Below are positions 24,363 to 62,241 of a stretch of 64,000 nt of DNA, piece by piece. The notes under the pieces are model-generated. The model did no database searches. It saw nothing but the letters and a program-made list of their open reading frames with translations, and was not told where the DNA came from. The stretch's first letter is position 1, and each line of letters starts with the position of its first letter. The stretch covers positions 464,958 through 528,957 of IMG/VR virus record IMGVR_UViG_3300035182_002586. One strand, 5' to 3'. A program made the position numbers and the translations under genes.

Positions 24363-24755
24363 GTGATGCGCCACTCATTCTCCTACCGCTTCACCCACCT
24401 CGTGACCGGGCCCTTCCCGTTCGAGTACTGGACCTGGACAGGCAAGTCCGGCGCTCACGCGTGGAGCCGACCCAACGCCCTGTCCGCCACGATGAAGATC
24501 GCCTTCCCGAGGCACACCATCACCGGAAGCCCCACCGACGTTCGCGCCCGCTACGATGACGCGATCGCACACCTCCCCCGAGGCGTACGGACAACGATCA
24601 CCGGGATCAGGGACAACGATAACGGCTCGATCGACCTCGGCACCATCGCCTGCGTGCAGGACGTTGATCTCACCGAGGACGAGTGCCCCTTCTGGTTCGA
24701 GCCACCGGAGCCTCAACCCCTGTGGGAGAAGCTCCTCGTGGACGACCCGTTCTAG
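24363..24755 (+). CDS. Hypothetical protein ending LWEKLLVDDPF
   Basis: RBS GAGGAG; shared C-terminal motif (see findings). Confidence 0.65.
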   Translation: MMRHSFSYRFTHLVTGPFPFEYWTWTGKSGAHAWSRPNALSATMKIAFPRHTITGSPTDVRARYDDAIAHLPRGVRTTITGIRDNDNGSIDLGTIACVQDVDLTEDECPFWFEPPEPQPLWEKLLVDDPF

Positions 24756-25261
24756 CCGACCGCGAACTGCCCCACGTGCTCGAACTCGGGCGGGGTCTCG
24801 ATCGCCACGTACTTGCCGTCGTGGAAGCGACCGTCCTCGTGGCGCTCGCCCTTGTCGTATCGGAACCAGTACTGGTCCCGATGGAAGCCGCCGTACGCGT
24901 AGCCCATCGCGAACGACTCGATCACGGCGAAGCCGTAGCTGTACTCCCACCAGAACTCGCCGCGATCACCACTGATCGCCTCGACGGCCTCGTCGAATGT
25001 CTCCAGGATCATCACGGTCCGCGTCCCACCGTAGCGCACGCTCGACGCGATCGTCGTCAGCGTGTACGCCCGCTTGCCCTTGAAGTCCGGGCTGAGCGGC
25101 TTCTCCGTGTGCCCCTCGGGCTTCAAGACCGAGTTCTCGAACGCCTTGTCGTACTCCTGCTCCGCCTCGGTCCGGACCCTCGGGTCCTGCGACAGAGCGG
25201 CCGCCACGCTCGCCAGTGCGTTGTTGCTCACAACCAGCGTCGGCTCTTCCTTCTCGCTCAT
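24752..25261 (-). CDS. Hypothetical protein
   Basis: 169-aa ORF; GGTGTA upstream (tacacc about 25272). Confidence 0.65.
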   Translation of the reverse strand: MSEKEEPTLVVSNNALASVAAALSQDPRVRTEAEQEYDKAFENSVLKPEGHTEKPLSPDFKGKRAYTLTTIASSVRYGGTRTVMILETFDEAVEAISGDRGEFWWEYSYGFAVIESFAMGYAYGGFHRDQYWFRYDKGERHEDGRFHDGKYVAIETPPEFEHVGQFAVG

Positions 25262-26047
25262 GGGGGTCCTTGTACACCGCTGGATGGATCACCCCACCCC
25301 CCGCGCTGTAGAGAGGACATGGGAAACGAAATCGTCTACATCAAGCTCCCCCCGCCCGAGAGCCCTCTCGGGGGGCTCACCGGCTTCACGTCCAAGGTCC
25401 TCGAACGCAAGAAGGGCCACGTCCTCGTGGACTACCCCCTCTCGTTCGGACACTGCACCCACCAGTGGGTCCCCGAAGCGTGGGTCGCCTGGACGCTCCC
25501 GAGCTGACATATGGAAACCCCGCAACGCCCCGCTCTCCTGGTCACCGTCGACGAAGCCTCCCACACGATGCGCCGCGTCGAGAAGTCGTCGTTCCTCCGG
25601 GATCAAGGGGTCACGGTCTACACCGTCCCCTCGGAGACCCCCATCTACGTGGACGAGCGCAAGGTCCCGGCCGTGGTGCTCATGGTCCGCGCAGAGACGG
25701 ACTACCTCGTCGGCGTGGGCGTCGGGTTCGTGACGCTCCTCGTTGAGGGCCTCCGCTGATTTCGGATGGATCGGTTCCCCCTCGCGCTGTAGAGGGGACA
25801 TGACCACGACGACCGCCCCCGCCATCGACGCGATGCTCGAAGTTCTCCTGACCGCGTGGGCGCTGTCGCAGGTCAAGGGCCCGGCCCCGAAGCTGAACGT
25901 GGCCTTCCCGCCCCGCCTCCAGTCGGCCCTCCGCAAGGCCCGCAAGCTCGAATACGTAACCGTCGACGATGCCGGCGTCTACCTCGACGAACTCGGCTGC
26001 CTCTACCTCGCCGAACACGGCAACCCCCAGATCTGAGGAAGTCACCA

Positions 26048-26343
26048 TGGAACGCACCACCGACCTCGACGTCATCCGCAAGCACCGCGCCCGCTTCACG
26101 TGGGGCAGCGTCCAGGAAATCCACGACATCGGCCCCTACACGATCGTCGAGTACATCTCCCGCAACCGAGACAAGGAAGACGAGACCTGCTTCCACGTCT
26201 ACGTCGACGGCAAGAACACCAGCTCGTCGACCTCGACGCTCGAAGGCGCCATGATCCTCGCCATCGCCCACAAGCACCTGGAGGTCAACGAGGCTCGCTA
26301 CATGGCGATGGCCGCCTGCAAGATCCTCGGCGTCAAGGAGTAG
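26048..26343 (+). CDS. Conserved-looking phage hypothetical protein (WG...IGPYTIVEY...FHVYVDGK)
   Basis: ATG after GAGGAAG. Confidence 0.65.
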
Positions 26344-26874
26344 GTGACCCCATGCCCGACAGGTCCCTGATCCGCGCGCTGCTCCTGGTCGCGTACCACC
26401 TCACCCGCTGCTTGCTGGTTGCGGTGGCCCTGCTGCCGCTCGTCGGCTTCATCTGGTTCCTCGGGCTGTTCTTCGAGTGGGCGCCACAGGAAGGGGCGTA
26501 GCGATGTCCACGAACACGTTCCCCAACTGGCTGGCCCTCATGGAGACCTGGTTGTGGGTCCACCACAAGGGTCAGCCCGCCGTCATCTTCTCCTACCCCA
26601 TCGCCGGTCCTGATCCTGGCTTCGCCGATCGAGTCAAGCGACTGCAAGAACGCTTCGGCGCGGACTTCCCGAGTCTCGTTGGCGCCGAGTTCGCTGTCCT
26701 CGTGTGCCCCACCTTCGAGGAAGCGGGCCGCATCCTGCGCGAGACCCCCGAGAACGACCCCTACACCCTCGTGTGGGACGGGAACAAGATCACGGGCCAC
26801 CACTGAAACCGGATGGATCGGCCCGTACCTCGCGGTGTAACTAAGGCAGGTCGCGCATCCACACGAGGTTACCC

Positions 26875-27540
26875 ATGAACGTGTCTGTTCTTCGCCCCGA
26901 GGTGTCGAAGGTCGCCGTGAAGGTCGCGCTGCAAGGCGTCGCAGCGGAGGGCTTCAAGTACGACGCCCATCTGGTCGATCTCGTGCGCCGGAACACGACC
27001 ATGCGCGGCCGGCAGGTGCAGTTCGGGCTCGACGCTCTCCGCCGTACGACCCGTTGGGCGCAAGTCGCCACGGGGATGAGCACGATCTTCGAGGAGGGGG
27101 TCAGCTCTCAGGACGCGCGTGACCGCTTCGAGGCCATCCGCGAACGCCCGAACTACTACTTCATGGTGACGAACTACCTCGGGCGCCAGGCGACCAAGAA
27201 GGGAACCACCGCCCCGAACGAGAAGCTCCTGACGGCCGAGCAGGCGTGCACGATCCTCGGCCTCAAGTGGGGCATGTGGAAGAAGCGCATGTGGCGGTTC
27301 CACAAGGGGGAGCCCAACACCTACAAGAAGGACGACCGCCGCCGCTTCACCGGTTGGATGCCCACGCCAGTGGAAGGGGCCTACCTCTCCAAGAAGGCGC
27401 TGTTCACGGCCGCCGACATCGCCAGGGTTCAGCGCCTCCATGGAGGTAAGGATCCGACTGTCGAGGTGAAGGTGACGCCGGAGAACGATGTCGAACCCGC
27501 CCCCAAGGCTTGGCCGCGCGCGGCGCGAGGAGGCCGGTGA
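26875..27540 (+). CDS. Hypothetical protein with C-terminal excisionase/MerR-like HTH
   Basis: LLTAEQACTILGLKWGMWKKRM pattern; class I motif at 26812. Confidence 0.5.
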   Translation: MNVSVLRPEVSKVAVKVALQGVAAEGFKYDAHLVDLVRRNTTMRGRQVQFGLDALRRTTRWAQVATGMSTIFEEGVSSQDARDRFEAIRERPNYYFMVTNYLGRQATKKGTTAPNEKLLTAEQACTILGLKWGMWKKRMWRFHKGEPNTYKKDDRRRFTGWMPTPVEGAYLSKKALFTAADIARVQRLHGGKDPTVEVKVTPENDVEPAPKAWPRAARGGR

Positions 27541-28229
27541 TGAAAAGCCCCCGTCCGCGTCTCCACCTGAAGGACGACGACTTCCGCGCCCTTCGCCACA
27601 TGGCCATCGACACGGACCGCACGGTCGGTGACCTGGTGGCCGAAGCGATCCAGCTTCTCTTCAAGCACCACAACTACGTGTGGGGGCAGACGAAACCTGA
27701 GAAAACGACCACACCCGCGAGCTGCGGCTCGACCCCGAAGAAGGGAGTTCGACCGATCGGCCGCCCGCGTCGGGCCCTCAACACCCCTCCGGAAGGGATC
27801 GAAGTCGAGCGCGTCCGACTCGGGTTGTCGAAACGCGAACACGCGAAGAAGATCGGGATCCCGATCGCAACGTACCTGGCCGCAGTGCAACGCGAAAGTG
27901 TAACGCCTGTGGTCACCGAGAAGCCCAACAAGGCTCCGGTCACCGAGAAGCCCAACAAGGCTCCGGTCACCGGAATCTCCCTGGAGACGTTCGCGAAGCG
28001 ACGTGGCGTGCCCGTGTCGCAGATCGTCAAAGAGGGCCCGGACGCGCCGCTCAAGATTCGGTCGAAGACGACGGGACGGTGCCTCACGACGAAGGGTGAG
28101 TGGGCAGACCTTCATCGCAGGACCATCGTGCTGACGACGGCGCAAGAAGCCGAGGAGTTCGTGAAGAGCGTCTTCGGGGAGTTGAGTGGTACGTCGGACG
28201 TGGAGATCGTTCCGGTCTACGCCAACTGA
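27540..28229 (+). CDS. Putative transcriptional regulator: N-terminal RHH plus Xre-like HTH
   Basis: LHLKDDDFRALRHMAIDTDRTVGDLVAEAI (RHH-like); IEVERVRLGLSKREHAKKIGIPIATY (HTH-like). Confidence 0.6.
   Translation: MKSPRPRLHLKDDDFRALRHMAIDTDRTVGDLVAEAIQLLFKHHNYVWGQTKPEKTTTPASCGSTPKKGVRPIGRPRRALNTPPEGIEVERVRLGLSKREHAKKIGIPIATYLAAVQRESVTPVVTEKPNKAPVTEKPNKAPVTGISLETFAKRRGVPVSQIVKEGPDAPLKIRSKTTGRCLTTKGEWADLHRRTIVLTTAQEAEEFVKSVFGELSGTSDVEIVPVYAN
27911..27972 (+). repeat. In-frame 27-nt tandem duplication (VTEKPNKAP x2)
   Basis: ggtcaccgagaagcccaacaaggctcc twice plus an 8-nt partial copy. Confidence 0.95.
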
Positions 28230-28605
28230 TCGGATGGATCGCCACCGACTCACGCTGTAGTAGGAACATGACCCCCGAAACCGCCCGCGCTGCCGTCGCC
28301 CTCTTCGTCAAGGCCGCCGAGACCCGCCTCTGCCACGAACCCGACGAGGAGACCCGCGAGATCGAAGGCAAGAGCATGATGCGCATCAGCGCAATGCTCG
28401 TCCCGTACAACAAGGCGAAGGTCGACCGTCTCTACGTGTGGCTGACCGACGAAACCATCACGGTCCAGGTCGCCGGCCAGACCCCTTCCCCCGAAGGCGC
28501 CGAGTACGGCTTCACCTCGGTCTCGGCCAAGGCCGAGACCAACGCCCAGTTCGACGCCGCCGGGCTCTGCCAGTTCTTCCTCGCCCTCGCCAAGGGGATG
28601 CGCTG

Positions 28606-28926
28606 ATGCCCGCCGAGATCCGCATCGTATACAAGCGCCCGGGTTGCCTCGCGGACGTGCAGTTCGTCGAGAACTCCCTCCAGGGGTTCCGCGCCCTGCT
28701 CGACGGCGGACACATCGAGTTCATCCGCCTCCGCGAGTACGGCCAGGGCATCCACGGGTACGCGGACGAGGAAGGACGCCTCAAGGACCTGCCCTACAAC
28801 CTCGACGTGGACGGCGAGCCCATCGTCGGCCCCATCTTCTTCTCGAAGGGTGACGGCGAAGGGGAAGACATCGGCTTCGAGGATGTCGAGGAAGCGTTCG
28901 CCCTCTGCCGCTTCCTCAACGCCTGA
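28606..28926 (+). CDS. DUF3846 family protein
   Basis: ENSLQGFRALLDGGHIE...ADEEGRLKDLPYN...IVGPIFF. Confidence 0.8.
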   Translation: MPAEIRIVYKRPGCLADVQFVENSLQGFRALLDGGHIEFIRLREYGQGIHGYADEEGRLKDLPYNLDVDGEPIVGPIFFSKGDGEGEDIGFEDVEEAFALCRFLNA

Positions 28927-29734
28927 TGGATCGCTCCGTCCCTCATGCTGTAGAGGAAGGGGATAAACCAGGAGGTGTGCTGTGGGAGGAAAAACCGTAG
29001 GAGACTGGGGCCAGGCACACAGCCGAGCACGCAACGCGCGAGAGTCCAACGACACCAAGGTCGAAGCCGCCCTTCGGGAGAAACGGGACGCCGAACGCTC
29101 CGTTGCTCTGATGCACATCAAGTGGATCCTCGAATCCCCCTACGTGACCGATCCGGCGTGGGTCATCAGGATTCGTACGAACCTCTTGGAGAACCCAACC
29201 CTGGTACCAGCCCGGAGGGAGCAAGTCGCCCTCGAACGCCTCTTGTTTTCGTTGCACCTCCGGGATTTGAACGGAGGCGAGAGCAAGCCGCGTTCCCCCG
29301 AAGAGGTCGAAGCTGCTAGGGCGAAACGCCGCGCTCTCGTCGCTGCCGTGCAAGAGAGGGGCAAGTTTCGAGAGAAGATCAATCAAGCCGCCTTCCGCCC
29401 ACAAGGGGAGCCACCGCCCAAACCACCCCGCAAAGTCTCTGTGGGTGACTACTGACGGATCGCACCACCCCCAGCAGTGTTACCTGTGAGGAGAACCCCC
29501 GATGCTGACCGTAGGGATGCGCGTGATCTATGAGCAGCCGGGCCACCGCCGGGAGACCGGCGTGCTGCTTCGCCTCATGGGAACAATGAGTTGCGAGATT
29601 CGCACGGACCGCTGCGCCTCTGACCCCAAGGGATGGCCGATCCCTTGGAGGACGCTCACCCTCAACGTCAACCGCGCCTTCGTGAGGCCGGAAGCGTCGA
29701 ACTACCCGAAGGCAGGGTAGGCGGAGATCGAACC

Positions 29735-30667: not shown

Positions 30668-31000
30668 ATGAGCCTAGCCCGCCACTGGATCATCCCCGGA
30701 GAAGTCACGCAAGAGGAGTTCGACTTCCTCGCGCACAGGCTAGGCGTCGTCTTCCCCGACCTCGGCGGGAAGTTCGAGCGCAACGCCCTCCAGAAGATGG
30801 TATGGGAAGTCGACCTCGACGAAGAGGACGCTCGGCGTGGTCACAACCTGAGCCGGGAGGTGAAGGTCGACCTCACGGTCCGACTGCGCAACAGCGCGCT
30901 CGCGAACCTCGTCGCCTACCGGAACCGGACGCCCGGAGCCATCCCGAAGGCCGAGCACATCACCCTGTGGGATCGCATCCTCAAGGACGACGGACTCTAG
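30668..31000 (+). CDS. Hypothetical protein ending LWDRILKDDGL
   Basis: 110-aa ORF; shared C-terminal motif. Confidence 0.65.
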   Translation: MSLARHWIIPGEVTQEEFDFLAHRLGVVFPDLGGKFERNALQKMVWEVDLDEEDARRGHNLSREVKVDLTVRLRNSALANLVAYRNRTPGAIPKAEHITLWDRILKDDGL

Positions 31001-31642: not shown

Positions 31643-32341
31643 TCAGGCCAGTGCGTCCCACAGGGCCGAAAGACGCCGCATCTCGGCCCCTATCTCCCCG
31701 AGCGCCTTCTTCACGTACGGCGCCATGTGCTTCGCGATGATCGCCGAGTGACGCTCCAGGTGCTTGTCCCGGCCCGCCACGTCCTTCGGGCACTCCCCCA
31801 TCGCCCGGATCTCCTGACGCATCGCCTCCAACACGTCCTCCGGAGTCCCCGGAGCGAACGCCAGCTCCCGCGCCACCGGAGCGCTCAGACGCTCCCGGCC
31901 CATGCGGACCCCGTGCACGTCGTACGCGCACCAGCGGACGCCCTTCGGCAGCTTGTCCGCCTCCTTGTGACTCCCCACCACGATGACCGGCCACGCCTCG
32001 TACCCGTCGTAGACCGTGTACGGCACCGGCATCTGGAACGTGTGGCCCTTCACCACGTCGCGGCTGAACCGCCTCTTCGTCGACCCTACCCGGATCGCCA
32101 TCCACCGGAGCGCCGTGTACGTGTACTCGCGCTCCATCCCGTGCAGGTGCGAAGCGTAGTCGAACCCGATCAGACGTTTGCCCCGGTCGTAGGACAGGTC
32201 CTCCGACGGGTCGCCCGCCGACCGGAACCCGCCCGGCTTGCCCTTCACCTCGGGCCAGCCCCGGAAGTTCGCCTGCATGAAGGCGACCATCTTCCGCTGC
32301 GCCGCCTCGGACTTCGTACGGATCGCGATGCTGTAACCCAT
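31643..32341 (-). CDS. Hypothetical protein
   Basis: 232-aa ORF; GGTGTA upstream (tacacc about 32353). Confidence 0.65.
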   Translation of the reverse strand: MGYSIAIRTKSEAAQRKMVAFMQANFRGWPEVKGKPGGFRSAGDPSEDLSYDRGKRLIGFDYASHLHGMEREYTYTALRWMAIRVGSTKRRFSRDVVKGHTFQMPVPYTVYDGYEAWPVIVVGSHKEADKLPKGVRWCAYDVHGVRMGRERLSAPVARELAFAPGTPEDVLEAMRQEIRAMGECPKDVAGRDKHLERHSAIIAKHMAPYVKKALGEIGAEMRRLSALWDALA

Positions 32342-36888: not shown

Positions 36889-39279
36889 CTAAATGCTGAG
36901 TGTGTCTGAGGGGTTGTACACCGGATTGCGAGAGGCGTCACCAGGAGACTTGTCCACCCCGTCGTCAGACGAGCCCTCCTGGACAGACGGCTCCGTTTTC
37001 TGCTTAGGTTTCAGAGGCTTGCGAGCCTTGCGAGCGGTCCCCGCCTTTTGAACGTCACCCGACCGCTCGCGAACCGGGGGCTTCGGCATGGCCTTACCGG
37101 TCAGAGCAACACGCTCAATGTTGTCCGTCGCGACCTCCAGGTCCGCGTGAAGCGTCGCCCCACACTGGAGGCAAACGAACTTCTCCCCATTGCGGTTACC
37201 CTTGTCACAGTGGCCGCACCGCGGGCACGTCATGCTCGTCCGCTGCGGAGTGACTTCGATGACGTACGACCCACGGTGAAGGCCGAGGTCTGAGAACGCC
37301 TTGTGGAGCGCTTGGATGACCCAGCGATTCTCTTTCTTCGCCGTGAAGAAAGCGTCCCAGCCCCGATCCCGCTTCCCCTTGCCGTGGAAGAAGCCGACGT
37401 TCAGGTCCTCGATGACGAACACCACACGCTCGCACTGCGTGTACCTCTTCGCCTCACGCTCGATGAAATTGACGCACCGACGAGCCAGCTCCAACTTCTG
37501 CTTCGCCAGCTTCGCGAAGGTCGGGTGGGCCCGCTTGAGGTCGAGCACGGCCTTGTTCAGAGCATCGCGCGTGTCCTTCGTAAGCCGGGGCCGCACACCC
37601 TCCATGCGAGAGATGCGCAGGTCGCGGAACTTGAGGGTCTCGCCCTCCTTGTTCTTGAAGTAGACGAGAGACTCGTCACCCCCCTTGCGGAGCACCGCGT
37701 CCACGATGAACGTGCTGTGCCCGGTCATCTCTCCCCACGGCACGTCCTGCGGACTGATCGAGTACTTTTCGCAGACGCGACGACGAGCGACTTCCACGCT
37801 CACGTCACACACACGGGTGATCTCCGCCTGCTGCTCGGGCGTCATCGTCTCGAACGCCTGCGCTCGAATGGCGTCCTCGAAGGCATCCATCCGCTTACGG
37901 TAGCTGGACAGCTCCCCAAGCAGCACGTCGGAGAGGAACATCCGGTGAACCGGCTCCGCAACCAGAGCGCCCTCCTGCGCCCGAACGCGGGAGACCTTCA
38001 TCGAGGCCGGGTTCGTCTGCCCAAGGTCCACCGATACGAGAGCGATCTCTTCCTTGGCCACAAGGCTCTCCAGAAGGGCCCGTGACCTAAACGTCGGGAC
38101 CGTCTTCCGTGAGTGCACGTCGACCTGACCGAGTTTGTACGTGAAGGTGATGAGCCCGCGCTGAACGTCAAAGACAGGGTACTCCGTGAAGAGGCCCAAG
38201 AGCGAATTCAAGCTCAGGCCCTCTTCTGGAGTGAAGCCGCGACGGCGGGCATCACGGAGAAGCCCCCGCACATCGATGATGGCCCAGTCCTCGCCGATCG
38301 AGATGGAGACGAGCAAAGCGTCCTTCGCGCTCGCCTTCTTGAGCGCCTCGGGGTCGTACTTCGAGGTACGGCCCGGCTTCGGCTTGTGACACGCGTTCGA
38401 GTACCACTTGCGCTGACGGCGAGACCCCTCACGCAGCGGGAACTTGTTCCTCTCCGGATCCCGCTGCCACTCGGGCACGTAACCACGCTCACCCTTCGGG
38501 ATGCTCAGCCTACCCTCCGGTAGACTCTCTACCAGAACCGCGTCAGGATCCCGCCGGTAGCCCGCGAAATCCACAGACATGCCAGAAAAGCCCTGAAGAT
38601 CCGTACACACACGCGGGGCCACCCCCTGGTAGCCGTAGATCGAAGGGTTCACCCCCGGAGGCTGGAGCAGACGACCCTCATCGTCCGTCGCGGACTCCAC
38701 CGTTACAGGAACTTCCGGGAGACCCTCCTCGACCCGACGCCGGTTCGCCCCCTCCTGACGCTTGAGGCTCTTCTTGTTCCGGTTCTCGACCTTCTTCAGA
38801 ACGCCCTTGAAACGGTTCACCGTGTTCTGAAAGATCGTATTCAGACCTTGAACCTGACGGTACCCGTAGTTCTCCACCCCCGTCTTCGCGAACCACTCCG
38901 CGTGACTCGGCTTGGATGTCCCCGGCGAGAACACGTCCAACTCCGCCACCGTGAGCCCGTAGACGTACTTCTGAATGGCCTCGGAGGCGCGAACGATCGG
39001 CCACTCCGAGAACGGGCGGCTCTGCGCCACGATCGTGCCCTTGGCCGGAGGTTTGAAGTTCGGAGGGTAGTCGCTCACCTTGTTGCGAAGGTATTCGACG
39101 CACGCCTCCTCACCCTCATGCTTGAGCTTCTTCCCCGCAGTCTTCTGATGGTCCTTCCGGAAACGGCCAGCCGGGAAGTGGGTCTTGATCACGTCGGAAA
39201 GCTTGAGGGTCGCGCTAGGAGCTGCCGCACCGCATTCACAATTCGTGGGCGCTACATCTGAGAGCGTGGGTCCAGGCAT
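36889..39279 (-). CDS. cas12j: CasPhi / Cas12j type V CRISPR effector nuclease
   Basis: 796 aa; RuvC-I VSVDLGQTNP, RuvC-II VIEDLNV, Zn ribbon CPRCGHC...CLQCG, RuvC-III HADLEVATDNI; CasPhi-like segments (HFPxxRF, PNFxPPAK, SRPFSEWPI, LLQPPGVNP, DVRGLLR, GWDxFFTAKKENRW); abuts the array. Confidence 0.97.
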   Translation of the reverse strand: MPGPTLSDVAPTNCECGAAAPSATLKLSDVIKTHFPAGRFRKDHQKTAGKKLKHEGEEACVEYLRNKVSDYPPNFKPPAKGTIVAQSRPFSEWPIVRASEAIQKYVYGLTVAELDVFSPGTSKPSHAEWFAKTGVENYGYRQVQGLNTIFQNTVNRFKGVLKKVENRNKKSLKRQEGANRRRVEEGLPEVPVTVESATDDEGRLLQPPGVNPSIYGYQGVAPRVCTDLQGFSGMSVDFAGYRRDPDAVLVESLPEGRLSIPKGERGYVPEWQRDPERNKFPLREGSRRQRKWYSNACHKPKPGRTSKYDPEALKKASAKDALLVSISIGEDWAIIDVRGLLRDARRRGFTPEEGLSLNSLLGLFTEYPVFDVQRGLITFTYKLGQVDVHSRKTVPTFRSRALLESLVAKEEIALVSVDLGQTNPASMKVSRVRAQEGALVAEPVHRMFLSDVLLGELSSYRKRMDAFEDAIRAQAFETMTPEQQAEITRVCDVSVEVARRRVCEKYSISPQDVPWGEMTGHSTFIVDAVLRKGGDESLVYFKNKEGETLKFRDLRISRMEGVRPRLTKDTRDALNKAVLDLKRAHPTFAKLAKQKLELARRCVNFIEREAKRYTQCERVVFVIEDLNVGFFHGKGKRDRGWDAFFTAKKENRWVIQALHKAFSDLGLHRGSYVIEVTPQRTSMTCPRCGHCDKGNRNGEKFVCLQCGATLHADLEVATDNIERVALTGKAMPKPPVRERSGDVQKAGTARKARKPLKPKQKTEPSVQEGSSDDGVDKSPGDASRNPVYNPSDTLSI

Positions 39280-46214: not shown

Positions 46215-47006
46215 CGGTGTACAGCGGGAAGGATTCTGGCACGCCCCGCCGGTCCACGCTGAAACGCCGGGACCTTAGCTCGCACACTGCGGTGGTGCGG
46301 GCCTGACAAGCTCGCGGGGAAGGGGCGAAAGACTGCACGGTCAGGTGCGAAAGCGGCCGCCCCTCGTCCCTACCAGGCGGGCATCGGGCTTGGTAGGGAC
46401 GGCGCCGAGGCATTCGCCTCTGCCCACCAACGCGGACGCGGGGGGACTCGTCCGCGTTGGGATCTCGCGCCCTAGCGTTCCTAGGGGTCGCCCCGGAGCC
46501 ATTGCCAGAGGCGGGGCCAGAAGCCAGGCTTGGGCTCGACCTTCTCAACGACCGTGCGATACGTCAACGACTCGGGTGTCTCGGGCTTCGGGCCGTACTT
46601 GTCCCGGAGGCTCTGGATCCACTGCTGGTGCTCGTCGAAGGGGTCCGGAGGCGCGATGCGCTTGACCCGCCAGCCCCTCCCATCGAACACGAGGCCGGCG
46701 CCGACCTTCGGGGGCTCGGCGGAGACGTCCCAGGGCCAGGGCTCGGGTGGCCTCATCGAGGCGGGTCCTCGATCCCGTCCTTCCCGCGAAGGACCGACAT
46801 CAGGACGTCGTAGCCGACGCGCTTCGCTTCCTTGGTCAGGTCGAGCAGCATCGCTTGGTGTCCGGCCTGGTGCCCGCGCTTGTACGCCTCGACGACGATC
46901 GGGTTCTCGTGGTTGAGGAAGCGCTCGTCATCTGCCCGGGAGGACGCACCGATGATCCAGCCGCGCCGGTAGCAGGCGAACCGTTCTTGAGGGGAGAGTG
47001 GTTTCA

Positions 47007-47729: not shown

Positions 47730-48062
47730 TCAGTCGTTGTTGTGCGGGTCGGGGATGCAGCCGAGGTTCTGGAAGTTGTCGGCGAAGAACTGCTCGACCG
47801 CGCTGAGATTCGTCGTCGGGGCCACGTCCAGCTCGACCCGGAAGCGGGTCTCGCGCGGGGCCGAGATACTCCCCTCGGTGAGGTAGAACGTCGTGCTGGC
47901 GAACGTGCGGTCGGTGGACGGGAGAAGCAGCTCGAACTCCAGGAAGTAGAGCTTCTCGCCCTTCGCGTTCTTGAAGGTCTTCTGCCAGACCTCGCGGCCG
48001 CCGGCCGGATACGTCCTGTATCCGGCCTCGGTGAGGCTCTCTCGGGTGACGGTCTTGTTCAT
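47730..48062 (-). CDS. Phage hypothetical protein
   Basis: MNKTVTRESLTEAGY...NLGCIPDPHNND; ATG at 48062. Confidence 0.6.
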   Translation of the reverse strand: MNKTVTRESLTEAGYRTYPAGGREVWQKTFKNAKGEKLYFLEFELLLPSTDRTFASTTFYLTEGSISAPRETRFRVELDVAPTTNLSAVEQFFADNFQNLGCIPDPHNND

Positions 48063-51000
48063 GGGGTTCAACCCTGCTTGCCGAACGAGTGCGCGACCTC
48101 GTGGTAGTGGGCCGCGCTCATGAGGTGGTACATGATGGCCGAGACGCGGCGCTCGACCGGGAACTGGTCGCGGCCCTGCTCGCCGCTCAGCCAGCGACGC
48201 GCGCACTTGAGGCACGAGCGGGTCAGCTTGAGCGCGTGGGCGCGGGTCATCTCGATGGTGGTCTCGGTCTCGATGGCGGGGTGCAGGCTGTCCATGTCCC
48301 CACTACAGCGGGAGGGGCGGGACGATCCATCCAGAAAAGGTGACGCCGCTAGAGGAGAACCGTCATCCCTGCGAGGAACTGAAGACGTTCCTCCCGGGTG
48401 CGGAACCGGTACATGCCCCCACGGAACGAGAGGCTCAGGTCCTCTGGGAGCGCCTTGTCTTCGTCGTAGAGCCAGTCGAGCAGCTTGTTGAGGGCGCTGG
48501 GAGTGAACCCCTCAGCCTCGTAGACCGGGTGCGGCTCCTGCTGCACGAGGTTGATGTTCATGGTCAGCCTCCGAACTCCTTGATAACGAACTCCGTCTCC
48601 TCGACGAGCCCCATGAGGTTGCGGGCCCGAGCCTGCTCGCAGCGCGTCCGGAGCATCGGCAAGTCGGCGGGGCCGAGCGGGCGAAGAACCTCGCTGAGCG
48701 AGGCCGAGTAGCCCACGGCGGGCTCCTGCACGCCGTCGGAGGGCGCACGGAAGGCGAGGCCCGGACCGGGAGCCTTCCCGGGAGGCGGGGTGTACGGCCC
48801 CTGGTAGCGCAGGATTTTCCCACCCACGAGCATGTAGATCGTGCCGACGGTCAGCGGGCTGTCCATTGCTTCTCCTACACCGCCACCGGGCGGGGAATAC
48901 CAGCGCCAATCACGTAGTAGAGGACCCGCGCGCCAGCGACATCCCTCCAGTAGTATCGGCAAAGCCCTTGCCTGCCAAGGAAGCGGAGTCGCATCACTTG
49001 GGGGTTCTTGGTCATGGGGATCAGAGGGCGAAGAGCGTTTTCTCGACGGCGGTGGCGTTGCGCACGGCGAACCGGATCTCGTAGCCGTCCGTGCGGGCGT
49101 CGCAGTCGAAGTACAACTTCCAGGTCGCCTTGAGCGGGCGGACGAACGCGTCGGCCGGGATGGCGTCGAGGATCGCCTTGACCTTCTTCTCCAGGCGGCC
49201 ACCGGCGACCGAACCGGTCACGCGCAGCTCGCAGGAACCCGTGAGACTGTTGACGAAGAAGCGGCGGGGCTTGGGGGTCTTCGAGGTGGCCATGACTCCA
49301 CTACCTCGCGTGGGGCGATCCATCCGGCCTCGGACGAATTCCTCAGACCTCGATCACGACTTCCTTGTAGGGCTTGCCCACGCCAGGGACGACGAAGATG
49401 TCGACACGGCGCGCCGCCCCGTCCTCGTGAAGGTCCTCCTCCAGCTCGTCCTCGGCCGCGATGAGGACGTAGCCGCCCGTCGCCGCGTAGGAGATCGCCG
49501 GGTCTCGGAACGCCTTGAGGCTCTCCCAAATGCTGGCCGCCACCCTGTCGGGGTCGCCGCCGTAGGTGGGGTTGTTCTTCGCCAGGAAGGTGCACGCACC
49601 GTCGAAGTCCGACTGGCTGAACAGGATCTTCATGAGGTTCTCTCGTACACCGCGGGGGTCGGGGTGGTCACAGGTCGTCCTTCCGGGCGATGAACTCGCG
49701 GTTGTCGGGGTCTTGGTTCGCCCAAGCGACGCCCCAAGCGATGGCCTGGTCGCGCCCTTCACGCGTCTCCGTCACGAAGAGGACCTGGTGGGCATCGAGG
49801 CCCGAACTCGCCCGGACGGACCAACCCTTGAAGGTCTTCGTGAGGATGGCGCCGCGTCGGCCGCGTCGGTGCTGGTCAACCTGCACCTTGATCAGACCGG
49901 GAGAGTCGTACGTGTCGGCATAGCGCCCGGGGGTACAGAGACGACGCGTCTCCTCGTCCCACTTCGAGGGGTTGCCGGCGAGGAGCGTGAAGTGCGCGGT
50001 GTTGACCATGACCCTACTACAGCGGGACCCCCAAGGGGATCCATCCGCGAACTCTTCTACCTGAGCGTGACAATACACATACCTCCTGTAGGGCTGAGGG
50101 TTGACGGAGAGAGGGTCACACGAGGCCGAAGTTCGCCAGCACGCACTCCTGCTCGACGATCGCCTTGAGCAGGCCGTCCTTCTTCGCAGCGAGGAGCTTG
50201 TACCCCTGCGAGCCGACCGGGAAGTTCGAGTAGATCGGGTCGGCGTCGAGGTCACGGAGCTGCATGACGAGCGCGGTGCGCTCCTCGATGGCCGTGAAGA
50301 CCTTGCCGGCCTCTTCGCTGTCCAGCTCGATGAAGCGGGCTTCCAGCTCGGCTTCGACGAAGTTGTAGAGCGCGGGGTTCGAGGACTTGAGGGCGGCGGC
50401 CTTGGACATGCGCGTGGGTGGGGACGATCCATCCGGAATCGTCACCCGGTGATCCGGCTGAAGTCGAGCTTGTCGTGCGGATCCATCAGCCGACCGACCG
50501 TAGCGGGACGACCTCGGGCTTGGGGAGCATGACGGTATCACCCAAGGCGAGAACAGCATCCTCCCAAGGACCGCGCTTGAACGCCACGATGTTCGGGGGG
50601 AACTTGGCGCTTCCCCCGGCAACGGCGTTGAACCACCGCAGGCCGAAGACCTTGAGGCCGTTCTCCCCCCACAGGTCGATAAGGTACCAGTAAGGGGTGT
50701 GCGAACGGAGAATCATCTTCCCGCTGGAGTCGACGAAGCCGTCGCACGGCTTCTGCTTCGGCGCCACCGTGAACGGCGTCTCCAAGGACACGTGGAAAGG
50801 GCCGACATCGAACGTCCGGCGAGACGGGGCCGTTTCGTTCACGTGCCATGCGGCGGTGTCGGGGTGGTTGGCGAGGAGACGCAGCAGAGCGTCCCGAAGG
50901 GCCAGGGCGCGTTCGAGACGGGTCGGCTTCTTCATACCCACCACTACCGCGGAAGGGTCACCTCGATCCATCACCGAGGGGCCGACCGCGAAGGACCGAG

Positions 51001-52368: not shown

Positions 52369-52566
52369 ATGTCCGTCTCCACCCCCGAGAAGAAGTCGTT
52401 CGAGCCCGGCGCCGTTGTGTCCCTTCGTTCGGGCGGCCCCCTGATGACCGTGCACTCCACGAGCTGCGTCAGTGGGAGCGAGCAGATCGCGTGCATCTGG
52501 TTCACCAACGGTGGTGACCTCCGGACCGAGAGCTTCCTCGCATGCGTGCTCAAGGCCGGCGCCTAG
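52369..52566 (+). CDS. DUF2158 (YodC-like) protein
   Basis: FEPGAVVSLRSGGPLMTV...CIWF...ESF. Confidence 0.85.
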   Translation: MSVSTPEKKSFEPGAVVSLRSGGPLMTVHSTSCVSGSEQIACIWFTNGGDLRTESFLACVLKAGA

Positions 52567-52583: not shown

Positions 52584-53564
52584 ATGCCGACCGGTGACCC
52601 TCTCTGCCCTTGCGGTTGCGGTGCGTACCTGAACCAGTGCCGGGGCGCGCCCCAGGACATGATCATCTCGGAAGAGCAGATCGTCCGACTGGGGGAGCAG
52701 ATCGTCCAGATGCAGGACAGGTCCGTCCTCGAACACCTGTGGGACGAACAGCCGGTCGTCTCTCGACCCCAAGAGGTTGTTGCCCTCATACAGCGCCTCA
52801 TCGAGCAGGGGATCCCCTTCGCGATCGGCGCCGACGGGCAGCTCGAAGCCATCCCCGCCGTCCCACGAATTGCCGGCATGGACCTCACCCCGACCGCGGG
52901 CACACGATCCGGCCCCATCTCGATGGGAACCCGCGTAGGCGCCGACCTGGGGGTCGATCAGGGGACGCACATCATCGGGTACGCGATGGCGCCGACCCCC
53001 AGCGACGGCCTTGTCTCCGTGAGCTTCCCCTCGACCGGACCGTGGGGCGAGCTGACCGAAGAGGAGCAGCGGCTCCTGGACGAGGCGGGCCTAGTCGAGG
53101 ATCTGCCACAGGCTCCCAGCCAGGACGAGCTGGATCGCCTCCGAAGTCTCACGGCACGTCTACGCATCGCCGCAGGGGAGCACGAGGAGCCTTCTGATCT
53201 ACCCCCCGAGATGTACACGACCCTCCGCGACATGTTCCCTGCGGCCGTACCAGCCGGCGCACCCCTCGTCTGGAACGGCACCTCCTGGTCGGGCGGCGCT
53301 GGCCCCATCCCCGAAACGGACGAGATGAGGCGCATCCAGCTCATCGGGGAGGTGGTCAACCGCATCCTCGCCCCCAACGCCCCCGACGCGCTCCGGGCCT
53401 CGGTCACATCGCTCTTCATCACGTCCGATCACCAAGTCGAGGAGTTCGAGGAGCACCTGCGCACCATCCGGCGCTACACACACCTCACCACGGCCGCCCC
53501 CGAGCCCGAACCGGCCCCGGAACCGGCACTTTCCCTGTGGGAACGCCTCGGAGAGGACGAATAG
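52584..53564 (+). CDS. Hypothetical acidic/Pro-rich protein ending LWERLGEDE
   Basis: 326 aa; N-terminal CPCGCG; shared C-terminal motif. Confidence 0.65.
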   Translation: MPTGDPLCPCGCGAYLNQCRGAPQDMIISEEQIVRLGEQIVQMQDRSVLEHLWDEQPVVSRPQEVVALIQRLIEQGIPFAIGADGQLEAIPAVPRIAGMDLTPTAGTRSGPISMGTRVGADLGVDQGTHIIGYAMAPTPSDGLVSVSFPSTGPWGELTEEEQRLLDEAGLVEDLPQAPSQDELDRLRSLTARLRIAAGEHEEPSDLPPEMYTTLRDMFPAAVPAGAPLVWNGTSWSGGAGPIPETDEMRRIQLIGEVVNRILAPNAPDALRASVTSLFITSDHQVEEFEEHLRTIRRYTHLTTAAPEPEPAPEPALSLWERLGEDE

Positions 53565-59370: not shown

Positions 59371-59397
59371 GGGGCTTCGCCAGGACCGGACTGTGTG

Positions 59398-59435
59398 TTG
59401 AGCACCCACCCTTGAGCACCCACCCTTGAGCACCC
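59398..59435. repeat. 14-bp direct repeats TTGAGCACCCACCC x2 plus partial (iteron-like)
   Basis: 59398-59411, 59412-59425, partial 59426-59435. Confidence 0.9.
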
Positions 59436-59464
59436 GGTCTGGCTGAGGCCATGGCGGGACAACT

Positions 59465-60352
59465 TCACCCTTCGGTGAGTGTCTTGGCCGTCTCCAGTCC
59501 TTTCGGGGTGGGCTGCCAGAAGCGCTTACCGCCAAGGGAGCGTTTGGAGACGAGGCCCGCCTTGGTGAGGTCATAGAGGGCGTTGAAGGCGACCGTGTAG
59601 TCGACGCCTAGAGAGCGAGCGACCCAAGCGCACCGGACGGGTGCTTGAGCGGCCACGAGGACTTTGAGGACGGTCTCTGAGCGTCGGAGGGGGACGTCTT
59701 TGGGGAGGTAGTTGCGCGGCTGTTCTAAACCCACGACGAAGTGTCCGAGGGCGATGGGCCAGCCGGGCCAGTGGTTTCCGTAGAAGCGGCGGGGGTTGCC
59801 GGGTGCCCGTGAGTCGAGGAGTCCGGTGTCGTACCTTTCGAACCAGTCATCTTGGTCACGGATGCCGATGTCTCGGGCGTACTGTGTGCACTGGTTGAGG
59901 GTGAACTTCCCGATGGGTTCGATGGGTTCGGGAGCTTCTTCGGGGGGTGGTTTCACGAAGCCAGCTCGGGCATCTGCGATCCACTGCAACAGGTCGGGCC
60001 CCATGGTGAACCACTCGCCTCCGACCCTGAGGTGTTTGAACCGGGCGTGGATGGCGTGTTCTTGGTCAGACTGTGGGAGTACGAGGAGAAGGAAGACGGG
60101 GTAGGGGGTGTTGGTTCGGACCGTGCTCATCCGTGACCGAACGTCTTTAGCGACGCCGATCTTGATGCGATCGAGACAGAGGATGGCGTAGACACCTGGA
60201 GTGACGGGCGGGAGGAGCGGTGGGAGGTCGAATCCCTTCTCGATGAGGATGTCTCGTCCGTCCCGCACCCCGGAGATGGACGGGGGGTGTGGGAGGGGGG
60301 CGAGTGTCTGAACGTAGGGGCGTTTCCGTCGAGCGAGGGCGCGGGCCTGCAT
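59465..60352 (-). CDS. T5orf172/GIY-YIG-like + integrase-repeat-like unit + winged-HTH protein
   Basis: GVYAI...IKIGVAKDVRSRM...EHAIHARF..LRVGGEWF; ARDIGIRDQDDW...PGNP..FY...WPGW..ALG; C-terminal VARSLGV...LY.L.KAGLV. Confidence 0.8.
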   Translation of the reverse strand: MQARALARRKRPYVQTLAPLPHPPSISGVRDGRDILIEKGFDLPPLLPPVTPGVYAILCLDRIKIGVAKDVRSRMSTVRTNTPYPVFLLLVLPQSDQEHAIHARFKHLRVGGEWFTMGPDLLQWIADARAGFVKPPPEEAPEPIEPIGKFTLNQCTQYARDIGIRDQDDWFERYDTGLLDSRAPGNPRRFYGNHWPGWPIALGHFVVGLEQPRNYLPKDVPLRRSETVLKVLVAAQAPVRCAWVARSLGVDYTVAFNALYDLTKAGLVSKRSLGGKRFWQPTPKGLETAKTLTEG

Positions 60353-60725: not shown

Positions 60726-61256
60726 ATGAAGCGTCCCTACACCTTCCTGCTGAATTTCGGGTACGCGGAGAGCGGGGGCCTTTCGTTCCTACCCTGGACA
60801 TCGCGGGTAACGTTCTCGACGGCTCGGGAGGCCCTGGTGGATCTGGCGACGTACCTTCGGGACGTGTACGTCTCGAAGTCGGTGCGTGAGCCTCGTGCTT
60901 GCTGTGTGGGGAGTCGGGAGAAGGATCCGGGGGCGCAGTTCTGCCACAAGTGTGGGCGTGTGCTTGCCGAGGTGGAGTTCGACCCCGAGGCGTTCATGCA
61001 GTGGGTGTCGGAGATCGGCGTGTGCGACACCGATACGTTCCACGGGGACTACATCGAGTGGGACGATGAGGCGCGGTGGGAGGCTGGTGTGCTGGAGGGT
61101 GCTCTCGTGAAGGGGGGCGGTGGGGCGCGCATCGTGTACACGGCGGAGAAGGTGCTGGCGGCGGCGATTGGGCACAGTCCGGACGAACGTGTGACGATCG
61201 AGAGCATTTTCGAGGCGCGCACGAAGTCGGGGTCGAGCCACTTCTCGTTCTGGTGA
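60726..61256 (+). CDS. Hypothetical protein with zinc ribbon (CC...FCHKCG)
   Basis: 176 aa; GGTGTA upstream. Confidence 0.65.
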   Translation: MKRPYTFLLNFGYAESGGLSFLPWTSRVTFSTAREALVDLATYLRDVYVSKSVREPRACCVGSREKDPGAQFCHKCGRVLAEVEFDPEAFMQWVSEIGVCDTDTFHGDYIEWDDEARWEAGVLEGALVKGGGGARIVYTAEKVLAAAIGHSPDERVTIESIFEARTKSGSSHFSFW

Positions 61257-61269
61257 GATTGGGGGGTCG

Positions 61270-61294
61270 GGCCCCCTCAATGGCTGAGGGGGCC
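61270..61294. terminator. 10-bp perfect hairpin between convergent genes
   Basis: ggccccctca-atggc-tgagggggcc. Confidence 0.6.
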
Positions 61295-61902
61295 GATCGA
61301 GGTGTTCTTCGTGTTGCCCCGACTCTGCGGTGTTCCCGCTCTGCCTCACGGTTGTGGGATCGCGGGGAGGGCGATCTGTGGTGGGGCCGGAGTGGCGGCC
61401 CATGAGGGGGGGTGTACGCAGCTTACTCGCGGTCGAGGTCCTCTTTCAGAGCCCACGCTTCGGCCGTGGACCACTTGATGTAGGCTTCGGTACGCTTGAA
61501 GTCGTCGGGGGGTCCGAGGTCTTGGACCTTGTAGGCTTCGGGGCAGGTGTCGCAGGCGACGCCATCCACGGTGCCGGTCATGGCGTTGCAGCAGTTGTTG
61601 CCGCAGCGTGGACACCTGACGAAGGGGCCGCAGTTCACGCAGATCTCCCATTGGAAGTCTTGGGGTGCGGTCATCGGAGTGCCCTTGCTTCCCACGCTTC
61701 GGCGAGTCGGATGAGGAAGGGGCAGAGACGTTCGGGGGCCTTCTTTGCTTCCTCGACGGCGTAGGCGCGCTCTTGCGAGCCGGTGGGGCTTGGGACGTAC
61801 TGGAAGGGGCCGGGGGGGCCGACCAGCGAGTGTGCGAGGTGCTGGCGGCCTTCGTCGGTCGTCAGGAGGGCGGCGACGGCTTCGTCTTTGGTCATGGTCG
61901 GC

Positions 61903-62241
61903 CTAGAGGTCGGGGTCGTCTGAGATCCGGTCCCAGACGGACGGCGGCTGCGGGGAGTAGGCGGCATGGTCGAGGTAGCGCAGGGCATCCATCCCCTTGC
62001 TTGGCCCCTCGAACTTCTTGCGGAAGAGCTGTGCGGTCTCCGAGGGTTCGTAGAGGGCGGAGGTCAGGAGGGACCAGGAGGCGTCGCAGGTTCCGCAGTG
62101 GACGACGTAGGCCGACTTGGGACCTTCGCACCCCGGGGTGAAGGAATCGGAGTCGAAGTGCAGCCGGAGGCCCGTGTGCCGTTGGTCCCGTTGGTGGGAG
62201 GTGACGGCGCGGAACCAGGGCTCGACGCGTTCGTGTTTCAT
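61903..62241 (-). CDS. Hypothetical protein ending VWDRISDDPDL
   Basis: ATG 62241; CxxC; shared C-terminal motif. Confidence 0.65.
   Translation of the reverse strand: MKHERVEPWFRAVTSHQRDQRHTGLRLHFDSDSFTPGCEGPKSAYVVHCGTCDASWSLLTSALYEPSETAQLFRKKFEGPSKGMDALRYLDHAAYSPQPPSVWDRISDDPDL

Follow-up and report, generated by a model that had tools for sequence, protein, structure and literature searches.

INTRODUCTION

Short peptides that dock unrelated proteins onto a common partner are central to eukaryotic and eukaryotic-virus biology, but they are barely documented in phages. Among the closest described cases is that of phages T4 and RB69, where the gp43 polymerase, gp33 and gp55 share a short hydrophobic and acidic C-terminal tail, tethered by a flexible segment, that docks about three clients on the phage's own sliding clamp, gp45. 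Bacterial beta-clamp-binding motifs (QL[SD]LF or QLxLxL) and the PIP-box of eukaryotic and archaeal PCNA clients are likewise short, linker-tethered and mostly terminal but sometimes internal or N-terminal, and they occur on DNA enzymes including methyltransferases and SNF2 translocases (in eukaryotes DNMT1 and ZRANB3/HLTF). In a third group, comprising the N-terminal capsid-targeting sequence (CTS) of T4, the C-terminal tail of the HK97 protease and the cargo-loading peptides of encapsulins, a short terminal peptide after a flexible linker addresses unrelated proteins to an assembly built from an HK97-fold protein. Finally, the C-terminal tip of SSB (DDDIPF), at the end of an OB-fold protein, follows a Pro/Gly-rich linker with an acidic run and a terminal hydrophobic residue, the run being followed by [IL]PF at the free C-terminus, and there a single protein carries the tip and binds many partners.

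Here we examined a 64,000-nucleotide stretch (the window; positions 464,958 to 528,957 of IMG/VR record IMGVR_UViG_3300035182_002586) from a giant (about 0.5–0.6 Mb) phage related to phage G. A preliminary description, made from the sequence alone, had proposed that four unrelated proteins encoded in the window share a Pro-rich linker followed by a [LV]W[DE][RK][LI]xx[DE] tail, and that this tail is a docking or sorting motif recruiting diverse cargo to one partner, such as the capsid interior, clamp, RNAP or a protease.

RESULTS

Four window proteins carry the tail

We first asked whether the four tails are correctly placed and whether their reading frames are real. All four were found exactly at their proposed coordinates and strands. 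Bearer 1 (24363–24755, plus strand; 130 aa) ends ...PQPLWEKLLVDDPF, bearer 2 (30668–31000, plus strand; 110 aa) ends ...HITLWDRILKDDGL, bearer 3 (52584–53564, plus strand; 326 aa) ends ...LSLWERLGEDE and bearer 4 (61903–62241, minus strand; 112 aa) ends ...PPSVWDRISDDPDL. All four frames passed a self-trained codon-usage model, and public gene calls on the 620-kb JGI contig end at the same stop codons, with bearers 2 and 4 matching exactly, bearer 1 being called one codon shorter (129 aa) and bearer 3 being called 25 codons shorter (301 aa), showing that the ORF ends are not mis-called.

The last 14 codons of bearer 1 (24711–24752, plus strand; tail ...EPPEPQPLWEKLLVDDPF) encode a Pro-rich lead-in, an LWEKLL helix core, an acidic run and a terminal F, and its body belongs to no known family. 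Bearer 2, also of no known family, has its tag at 30956–30997 (plus strand; tail ...PKAEHITLWDRILKDDGL) and lies in an operon headed by the GATGGATC motif. In bearer 3 a long PEPEPAPEP linker precedes the tag (53520–53561, plus strand), and no homolog of its body was found in five related jumbo phages or in IMG/VR. Bearer 4 has a Cys/His-rich body with a weak zinc-finger-like Pfam hit below cut-off, and its tag lies at 61906–61947 (minus strand; tail ...SPQPPSVWDRISDDPDL).

Two further window genes were considered but not counted as members. A weaker fifth case included in the preliminary description (46481–46756, minus strand; ...RLWQWLRGDP) lacks the acidic residue after W and the Arg. A possible degenerate tail, ...RRLSALWDALA (31643–32341, minus strand), has S-x-L-W-D but neither Arg nor an acidic run. 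The gene at 47730–48071 (minus strand) is untagged and ends ...DPHNND, whereas its ortholog in the related genome G004 continues ...EEEGKPPPTRFERI, which shows that the tag is a modular C-terminal appendage.

The motif is enriched at C-termini genome-wide

We next asked, as the preliminary description had set as a test, whether the motif is enriched at C-termini across the genome (the 528,957-bp record with 721 genes, here called G000). The strict pattern [LV]W[DE][RK][LI]..[DE] had 8 hits in the last 16 residues against 2 in about 145,000 internal positions (40-fold), with 0.09 C-terminal hits expected from the internal rate (Poisson P about 1e-13). The core [LVIM]W[DE][RK][LIVM] had 11 C-terminal hits, compared with a mean of 0.1 and a maximum of 2 in 2000 tail shuffles, and in an unbiased scan of gapped triplets W.RL was the top C-terminal pattern of the genome (13 observed, 0.8 expected, p 6e-12). 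The wider set comprises 13 C-terminal bearers, one sub-terminal copy and one internal copy. Codons for the motif differ between copies and the downstream DNA is unrelated, so that this is a protein-level signal and not a DNA repeat. The bodies are also unrelated, as no G000 bearer hit any other bearer by BLASTP at 1e-3, and none has a Pfam or PHROG family. The observation of a shared tail is therefore confirmed, although its scale was underestimated, with 13–15 bearers in this genome and up to about 50 in a relative instead of four.

Related jumbo phages carry the tag in their own dialects

The tail was found to be the local dialect of a clade-wide tag, P-[ST]-x-(W/F)-[DE]-(R/L)-(I/L/M)... followed by an acidic run, in phage-G-like jumbo phages. 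Among three related genomes, G001 has PTRFER... on 43–50 proteins, G004 has [ST]RF[DE]R... on 16–18 and G002 has SRFDL... on 9. In the corresponding enrichment tests RF.R was observed 44 times in G001 against 1.0 expected (p 4e-55) and 21 times in G004 against 1.1 expected (3e-20), while RFD was observed 12 times in G002 against 1.0 expected. The 90 bearers fall into 71 BLAST-unrelated body groups.

Orthologs either keep the tag in the dialect of their own genome, for example SRFDLMDE... in G002 against TRFDRVLEDD in G004, or gain and lose it as a module. A family conserved in all four genomes ends NRFSRILLDDDD, NRFTRLFNDDDD, NRFDRMMDDD and, in G000, QIDRILEDEGD.... An SNF2 helicase carries the tag internally, in its inter-lobe linker, at the same alignment position in G000 (SLWDRIISDEDP) and G004 (TRFSRILDEDSP), each in its own dialect. 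Internal and N-terminal copies keep the acidic flank and the disordered context. Pro is 2–3.7 times enriched in the 15 residues before the tag, and AF2 placed a helix on the tag of the conserved bearer, albeit in a low-confidence model. The tag is thus short (under about 15 residues), with a few fixed positions in a flexible or disordered context, and is present on unrelated proteins independently of the folded body, as in the generic definition of a short linear motif, whereas for the binding to a defined pocket of a partner domain that this definition also includes, the concerted dialect shift is only indirect evidence.

G001 (49% GC) and G004 (58% GC) share one dialect while G002 and G000 differ, and the dialect thereby tracks phage phylogeny as judged by median ortholog identities, as would be expected for a phage-encoded receptor.

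Recognizable bearers and genomic context

The bearers that could be recognized act on DNA or are membrane-anchored. The former include the SNF2 helicase, a Zn_ribbon_Top1 protein, a DUF3268 zinc finger and a RecA/DnaB-like ATPase, with CxxC being enriched among bearers (odds ratio 2.2, p 0.003), while multi-copy CcrM/DpnA-like DNA methylases end in related F-D-x-hydrophobic-hydrophobic...acidic tails. The membrane-anchored bearers have Lys/Arg clusters right after the N-terminal helix, so that the tag is cytoplasmic. Bearers lie in gene blocks marked by the promoter-like motifs GATGGATC and CGGTGTA, which are absent from the structural blocks; any temporal class of these motifs is only inferred.

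A phage-encoded beta clamp is present in all four genomes

As a candidate receptor we identified a three-domain, bacterial-type beta sliding clamp conserved in all four genomes, with PDB profile hits 1VPK and 8DT6, an AF2 model with a pLDDT of 89 and a Foldseek match to bacterial DnaN (E 1e-18). Its gene is located in a RecA/Rad50/Mre11 block, and the protein has a conserved C-terminal ...TRF-MPS-D strand. The phage Tunturi_5 lacks both this clamp and the tag, whereas LR745208, a distant relative, has a distant clamp and a different, T4-like tail (S[IV]LD[ML]F) on its methylases. The presence/absence pattern of the clamp is, however, shared by 35 other core genes, and the clamp diverges no faster in G000 than the average core gene (ratio 0.75, 25th percentile). 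The family-A DNA polymerase (PolA replicase) of the phage, the classical type of clamp client, does not carry the tag, and a single complex prediction of the clamp with a tail gave no answer.

DISCUSSION

Taken together, the inference of a short docking or sorting motif with an amphipathic helix and an acidic end is strongly supported by the comparative evidence, whereas the interpretation in the preliminary description is only partly supported as a whole, since the partner remains unidentified and the comparison with SSB tails holds only as an analogy. In our best explanation, to which we assign a probability of about 0.6, a Pro-rich flexible linker leads into a one- to two-turn amphipathic helix that starts with a capping box (Pro, then Ser/Thr, x, aromatic, Asp/Glu), continues with Arg and one or two aliphatic residues, and is followed by an acidic run and, in this genome, by a terminal Leu or Phe. 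Phage-G-like jumbo phages would attach this motif to many otherwise unrelated, mostly non-structural proteins as a docking peptide for one receptor co-evolving with the phage lineage, with LW[DE]R[LI] being the G000 dialect of the RF[DE]R[IL] / RFDL[MI] tag of the clade. That all copies within a genome share one dialect, and that orthologous copies switch dialect between genomes, is the expectation for a single co-evolving receptor, but this is indirect evidence. Because the recognizable clients act on DNA or anchor to the inner membrane with the tag facing the cytoplasm, we infer that the receptor is a DNA-associated hub of the infected cell, the most specific candidate being the phage's own, highly expressed beta clamp, used as T4 uses gp45 or eukaryotes use PCNA. 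Our analyses establish the motif, its enrichment, its modularity, the concerted dialect shift, the client classes and the existence of a phage beta clamp, whereas it is by inference that the motif binds a single receptor, that this receptor is phage-encoded and that it is the clamp.

Compared with the T4 clamp tails, the tag would serve 13–50 clients instead of about three, its sequence differs (a helix with a capping box and Arg), and the clamp is of the bacterial three-domain type and not gp45. Forty to fifty clamp clients in one genome would be unprecedented for a bacterial-type clamp. The tag consensus P-[ST]-[LR]-[WF]-[DE]-R-[IL] does not match the bacterial clamp-binding consensus, as it has no conserved Gln, has Arg at the fourth position, which is hydrophobic in the bacterial motif, and has a strong acidic flank; only the G002 dialect RFDL[MI] comes close. 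The hydrophobic spacing i, i+3, i+4 matches that of the PIP-box, but the aromatic and aliphatic positions are reversed. With regard to the SSB tip, one window tail ends ...VDDPF, but the end residues of the tags vary (F, L, E, A, V), the bearers have no SSB domain and no PF00436 match was found in the four genomes. Moreover, the conserved part here is the W/F helix upstream of the acidic run, which the SSB tip does not have, and the logic is inverted, with many clients carrying the tail.

Among alternative explanations, a capsid or procapsid cargo-loading tag, by which tagged proteins would bind the HK97-fold capsid interior, scaffold or portal and be packaged and ejected into the next host, is unlikely but retains some support. 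In addition to the precedents for loading of unrelated proteins into HK97-fold shells by short terminal peptides, this phage has an HK97-fold major capsid protein (MCP; a PDB 6WKK relative), three larger bearers in G001 and G004 contain fragments of the MCP, and the MCP is exceptionally conserved (92–93% against medians of 45–57%), as expected for a surface with many binding partners. Anti-restriction enzymes as cargo would resemble DarB of phage P1, and methylase and helicase cargo has a precedent in P1 Dar. However, the sequences differ from those of the known capsid-targeting peptides, the integral membrane proteins with cytoplasmic tags are unlikely cargo, bearers lie in non-structural gene blocks, the bearers and tags are acidic, the prohead protease has its own, different conserved C-terminal tail (...KG-LF-LG), and a nearly invariant MCP is hard to reconcile with three tag dialects.

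Mimicry of a host motif, with the tail docking onto a host clamp, RNA polymerase, divisome or nucleoid protein and the dialects reflecting different hosts, is about equally doubtful. Accessory early proteins of phages commonly target host hubs, the genomes differ in GC content (49–64%), so that the hosts probably differ, and the phyletic screen for a phage receptor was not decisive. Yet G001 and G004 use the same dialect even though their hosts are probably different, and the dialect follows phage relatedness; the flank of the 620-kb contig is phage-like and thus gave no indication of a host.

Still less likely is a shared degron, marking early or middle proteins for timed removal by a host or phage protease or adaptor (ClpXP, FtsH or Lon-like). 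The mostly C-terminal position on an exposed flexible linker, and the range of non-structural cytosolic and membrane-anchored bearers, which FtsH or Clp proteases can handle, would be compatible with this view, and phage regulators with C-terminal degrons exist (lambda CII, Mu repressor). However, the distance from the core to the C-terminus varies from 4 to 15 residues, the conserved copy between the two lobes of the SNF2 helicase and the functional-looking N-terminal copies do not fit a terminal degron well, a core protein conserved in all genomes and the multi-copy methylases carry the tag or related tails, and known bacterial C-degrons (ssrA-like, ClpX C-motifs) need a free C-terminus and are non-polar at the extreme end, not an acidic helix, whereas the ends here are acidic. 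An artefact from chance similarity, mis-called ORF ends or a repeated DNA element, conceivable in a high-GC genome with many spurious ORFs, is refuted by the enrichment statistics and shuffles, the differing codons and unrelated flanks, the independent public gene calls and the parallel tags in three other genomes.

A more far-reaching possibility, which the evidence allows but which we regard as tentative and rather unlikely, is that phage-G-like megaphages run a proteome-wide addressing system in which a helical zip-code peptide with lineage-specific dialects, on 2–7% of all their genes, recruits DNA enzymes, zinc-ribbon proteins, dozens of small acidic accessory proteins and membrane tethers onto the phage's own beta clamp or another phage-built replication-factory hub. 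That would give a bacterial virus a PCNA-like interaction hub with far more clients than any known bacterial or phage clamp.

Whereas the T4 clamp tails and the capsid-targeting sequence involve only a handful of proteins, a single motif here labels 13 to about 50 otherwise unannotatable proteins per genome, and its genome-specific dialects give a built-in test of specificity. In practical terms, the tag is a simple sequence rule for grouping hypothetical proteins in a widespread environmental phage clade (more than 50 IMG/VR contigs). If found, the receptor would assign a common cellular address to a large share of the dark matter of these 0.4–0.6 Mb phages, and it would also provide a portable tag for directing proteins to that site and a natural system for studying the co-evolution of motif and receptor.

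Genome context of the window

The 64-kb window is the right end of a single 528,957-bp virus record with 64% GC (hereafter G000), which is itself the right 529 kb of a 620,031-bp JGI metagenome contig (Ga0373636_0000001), the end of the window lying about 450 bp from the contig end. Baseplate-J and DUF2460 tail proteins mark it as a tailed phage, as does an HK97-fold major capsid protein (MCP) matching phage G gp27 (PDB 6WKK, E 3e-61), and it is therefore a phage-G-like jumbo phage. More than 50 related IMG/VR contigs exist, and deposited relatives are LR745208 (485 kb), Tunturiibacter phage Tunturi_5 and phage G. Although the record is labelled as a provirus (529 kb), the 10 kb beyond its left boundary is phage-like, with small ORFs, a T4-type endonuclease VII, an RF-1 domain protein and a histone-deacetylase-family protein, so that this flank gave no identification of the host. 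The true genome may be about 620 kb, with the provirus call being a trimming artefact. As raw ORF lists were useless at this GC content, we trained a codon-usage model on the genome, using translation table 11, and thereby obtained 721 genes covering 89% of the record.

Some other genes were also recognized. The largest gene of the window (767 aa, 36889-39192, minus strand) carries a Cas12f1-like TNB domain in the public pre-computed Pfam hits and is thus a TnpB/Cas12-like protein, with a second, 248-aa protein having the same domain found at G000 23445-24191, next to the block encoding the sliding clamp discussed below. Public pre-computed hits also showed a weak MUG113/T5orf172 domain (GIY-YIG-related) in a 295-aa gene (59465-60352, minus strand), and DUF2158 in a 65-aa gene (52369-52566, plus strand) just upstream of the third tag bearer of the window. 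Outside the window, a 336-aa protein of the tail/structural block (G000 362461-363474, minus strand) matched Pfam Volactin (PF25216) at 2.4e-75 over the full profile. This is a phage-encoded actin-like protein, with orthologs in LR745208 and in the three complete relatives described below (G001, G002 and G004), conserved at 54-64% identity.

Verification of the C-terminal tails

We first asked whether the four tails of the preliminary description were correctly assigned. All four were found exactly as described, their ORFs passed the codon model, and public gene calls on the JGI contig ended at the same stop codons. The strict pattern ([LV]W[DE][RK][LI]..[DE]) was found 8 times in the last 16 residues of the proteins and 2 times internally, against 0.09 C-terminal hits expected from the internal rate (P about 1e-13). 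The five-residue core was found in 11 tails, against a mean of 0.1 and a maximum of 2 in 2000 tail shuffles, and in an unbiased scan of C-terminal triplets W.RL was the top pattern of the genome, with 13 observed and 0.8 expected (p 6e-12). The observation thus held, and it could be extended. A fifth, weaker case in the preliminary description did not fit the motif.

The copies use different, synonymous codons and have unrelated flanking and downstream DNA, showing that the signal is in the protein and ruling out an origin in a DNA repeat, MITE or terminator. TAG stop codons ended 10 of the 14 genes with W[DE][RK] tails in G000, against 35% genome-wide (p about 0.006), but as the same was not seen among bearers in G001, G004 or G002, this is probably chance.

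The catalogue for this genome comprised 13 C-terminal bearers of 71-326 aa, four of them in the window, together with one sub-terminal copy in a 101-aa protein and one internal copy in a 752-aa SNF2 helicase. None of the small bearers, including those of the window, had a Pfam or PHROG family, and no bearer body resembled another. The body of P0003, the third bearer of the window, had no relative in IMG/VR or in five related genomes, while a word-indexed search using the tail region of P0002, the second bearer, found only P0002 itself.

A clade-wide tag with genome-specific dialects

We next fetched three complete relatives, G001 (513 kb, 49% GC), G004 (407 kb, 58% GC) and G002 (448 kb, 59% GC), and subjected them to the same unbiased C-terminal scan. 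In G001 the top pattern was RF.R, with 44 observed and 1.0 expected (p 4e-55), typical tails being PTRFERILxDD... and PTRFEREDVI-COOH, carried by 43-50 bearers (about 7% of genes). In G004 it was again RF.R, with 21 observed and 1.1 expected (p 3e-20), with tails of the type [ST]RF[DE]R... on 16-18 bearers, whereas in G002 it was RFD, with 12 observed and 1.0 expected, and with tails such as SRFDLIG-COOH and SRFDLMxxD... on 9 bearers. When aligned on the aromatic residue, the dialects read P-[ST]-[L/R]-[W/F]-[D/E]-[R/L]-[I/L/M]-(L), followed by an acidic run.

The invariant part of this pattern, Pro-Ser/Thr-x-aromatic-Asp/Glu, is a classical helix N-cap capping box, and the aromatic residue and the aliphatic residues at +3 and +4 fall on one face of the helix. 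As inferred from sequence, the tag is therefore a short amphipathic helix on a Pro-rich tether. An AF2 model of the bearer that is conserved in all four genomes also placed a helix over the tag, but that model was of low confidence (pLDDT 51) and too poor for a fold search.

A scan of IMG/VR revealed PTRFERI tails next to stop codons on at least five further jumbo contigs, while the TLWDRIL dialect is nearly unique to this genome. Two more distant relatives lack the tag. Tunturi_5 has nothing comparable, whereas LR745208 (LR745208.1) has a different tail, S[IV]LD[ML]F(G/A/S), on five larger proteins (27491-29038, 281945-283492, 291388-292194, 292187-293818 and 392525-396214), three of which are DNA methylase paralogs. 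This is a T4/RB69-like, clamp-binding-type tail and a separate dialect in a distant relative. We also considered a 392-aa core protein ending ...KFERIL (orthologs ...YERIT) as a model for the tag, but this is a conserved end of a folded structural-block protein and the similarity is probably a coincidence.

Modularity and concerted change of the tag

The 90 bearers found in the four genomes fall into 71 BLAST-unrelated body groups. Where orthologs exist, the tag is kept but written in the local dialect, as exemplified by G002 SRFDLMDE... against G004 TRFDRVLEDD, and by several G001-G004 pairs. A 174-aa protein conserved in all four genomes ends NRFSRILLDDDD, NRFTRLFNDDDD, NRFDRMMDDD and, in this genome, QIDRILEDEGD.... 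A search using the alignment of this conserved bearer found nothing, because the G000 copy is too divergent. In other families the tag is simply present or absent. The window gene at 47730-48071 ends ...DPHNND, while its G004 ortholog continues with ...EEEGKPPPTRFERI, and the tagged G000 gene at 154970 has untagged orthologs. The most telling case was the SNF2 helicase, in which the motif lies in the linker between the two helicase lobes and reads SLWDRIISDEDP in G000 and TRFSRILDEDSP at the same alignment position in the 52%-identical G004 ortholog. All copies in a genome, whether terminal or internal, have therefore changed together, which is what a single co-evolving receptor predicts.

Properties of the tagged proteins

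The bearers are small and acidic (median pI about 5.5, with none being basic in G000) and enriched in CxxC pairs (odds ratio 2.2, p 0.003). The few recognizable domains all bind or act on nucleic acids, these being the SNF2 helicase, a topoisomerase-type zinc ribbon, a DUF3268 zinc finger and a RecA/DnaB-like ATPase. The universally conserved bearer sits beside a RecJ-like DHH protein, a Dam methylase and a CxxCxxCC protein, and multi-copy CcrM/DpnA-like DNA methylases end in related tails, such as EAFDLMLELESE, EDFDFMMGLESE and SGFDYMDDLPQEGD. A subset of the bearers in G001, G004 and G002 has an N-terminal membrane anchor directly followed by Lys/Arg clusters, so that the tag faces the cytoplasm at the end of a long Pro/Glu-rich linker.

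Three larger bearers contain fragments of the MCP. Fragments of this type, of 45-90 residues and 40-56% identical, were seen in several accessory proteins (G001 220848-225611; G004 335639-343697; G001 462580; G002 105633), some of them being fused to the tag, and they could be remnants of a duplicated MCP gene, or decoys. The MCP itself (G000 343027-343959, minus strand) is 92-93% identical among four phages whose other core proteins have median identities of 44-57%, and a LAGLIDADG homing endonuclease gene lies immediately next to it. Scaffold candidates are at G000 344007-344636 and 344771-346282.

The bearers lie in gene blocks marked by two strong promoter-like motifs, found in the window and over the whole genome, as for example in the 420-528 kb bins of G000. 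One is GATGGATC, about 36 nt upstream of the start of 59 genes and seen in G000 only, and the other is [CT]GGTGTA (CGGTGTA), about 18 nt upstream of the start of 159 genes and found also in G001. The structural blocks lack both motifs, which are probably promoter classes of non-structural genes.

Candidate receptors

The dialect follows phage relatedness, with G001 and G004 being the closest pair and sharing a dialect despite a 9-point difference in GC content, and with G000 being the outgroup and the most different. We read this as favouring a phage-encoded receptor. Among classic peptide-binding hubs, the clade encodes its own beta sliding clamp, conserved in all four genomes. This protein has weak Pfam hits to the N- and C-domains in the correct order and PDB profile hits to DnaN, and a confident AF2 model (pLDDT 89) has Foldseek neighbours that are all bacterial clamps (E 1e-18). 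Its codon score is high, it sits in a RecA/Rad50/Mre11/nuclease block, and its C-terminal strand, which in bacterial clamps lines the client pocket, is invariant across 15 homologs. Furthermore, Tunturi_5 lacks both clamp and tag, while LR745208 has a distant clamp and T4-like tails.

These features fit a hub resembling T4 gp45 or PCNA, but this is far from proven. A single complex prediction, using the G000 clamp (15-row alignment) together with residues 76-110 of P0002, gave a score of 0.00 with the fold of the partner being uncertain and without controls, and is evidence neither for nor against binding. The family-A DNA polymerase (G000 318160-321198, minus strand), being the canonical clamp client, has no tag. 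In all four genomes it instead has an acidic N-terminus, an 80-residue Pro/Ala/Ser-rich linker after the polymerase domain and a conserved C-terminal domain of about 75 aa (...ILIDP...), which may be its own docking module. Searches for Pol III alpha, PolB and SSB family genes found none. The motif does not fit the QL[SD]LF consensus, and when clamp divergence was set against dialect divergence, the clamp was unremarkable among the core genes (25th percentile). Finally, a phyletic screen for core genes present in the four tag-positive genomes but absent from two tag-negative relatives, which are too distant for the screen to be decisive, left 36 candidates, such that 35 other core genes share the pattern of the clamp. 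The core set comprises 89 genes.

Of the alternatives, loading of cargo into the capsid has good precedents and is hinted at by the bearers with MCP fragments, but fits poorly with the membrane-anchored bearers, with the non-structural gene class and with three dialects facing a 92-93% invariant MCP. A host hub as the receptor cannot be excluded, because the host is unknown. A degron would fit the exposed C-terminal position, but not the conserved internal and N-terminal copies or the acidic ends.

The general inference of the preliminary description, being that of a short docking or sorting motif bringing diverse proteins to one partner, is supported by comparative evidence, the interpretation as a whole is partly supported, and no partner has been identified. 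The motif, its enrichment, its modularity and the concerted change of dialect are results of the analysis, whereas binding to a single receptor, the phage origin of that receptor and its identity with the clamp are inferred, the phage clamp being the most specific testable candidate. In the literature searched, we found no description of the motif strings or of shared tails in phage-G-like phages. Docking peptides shared by unrelated proteins are known as such, but three aspects are new here, these being the scale of up to about 7% of the genes of a phage, the lineage-specific dialects, and the occurrence of such a tag in megaphages.
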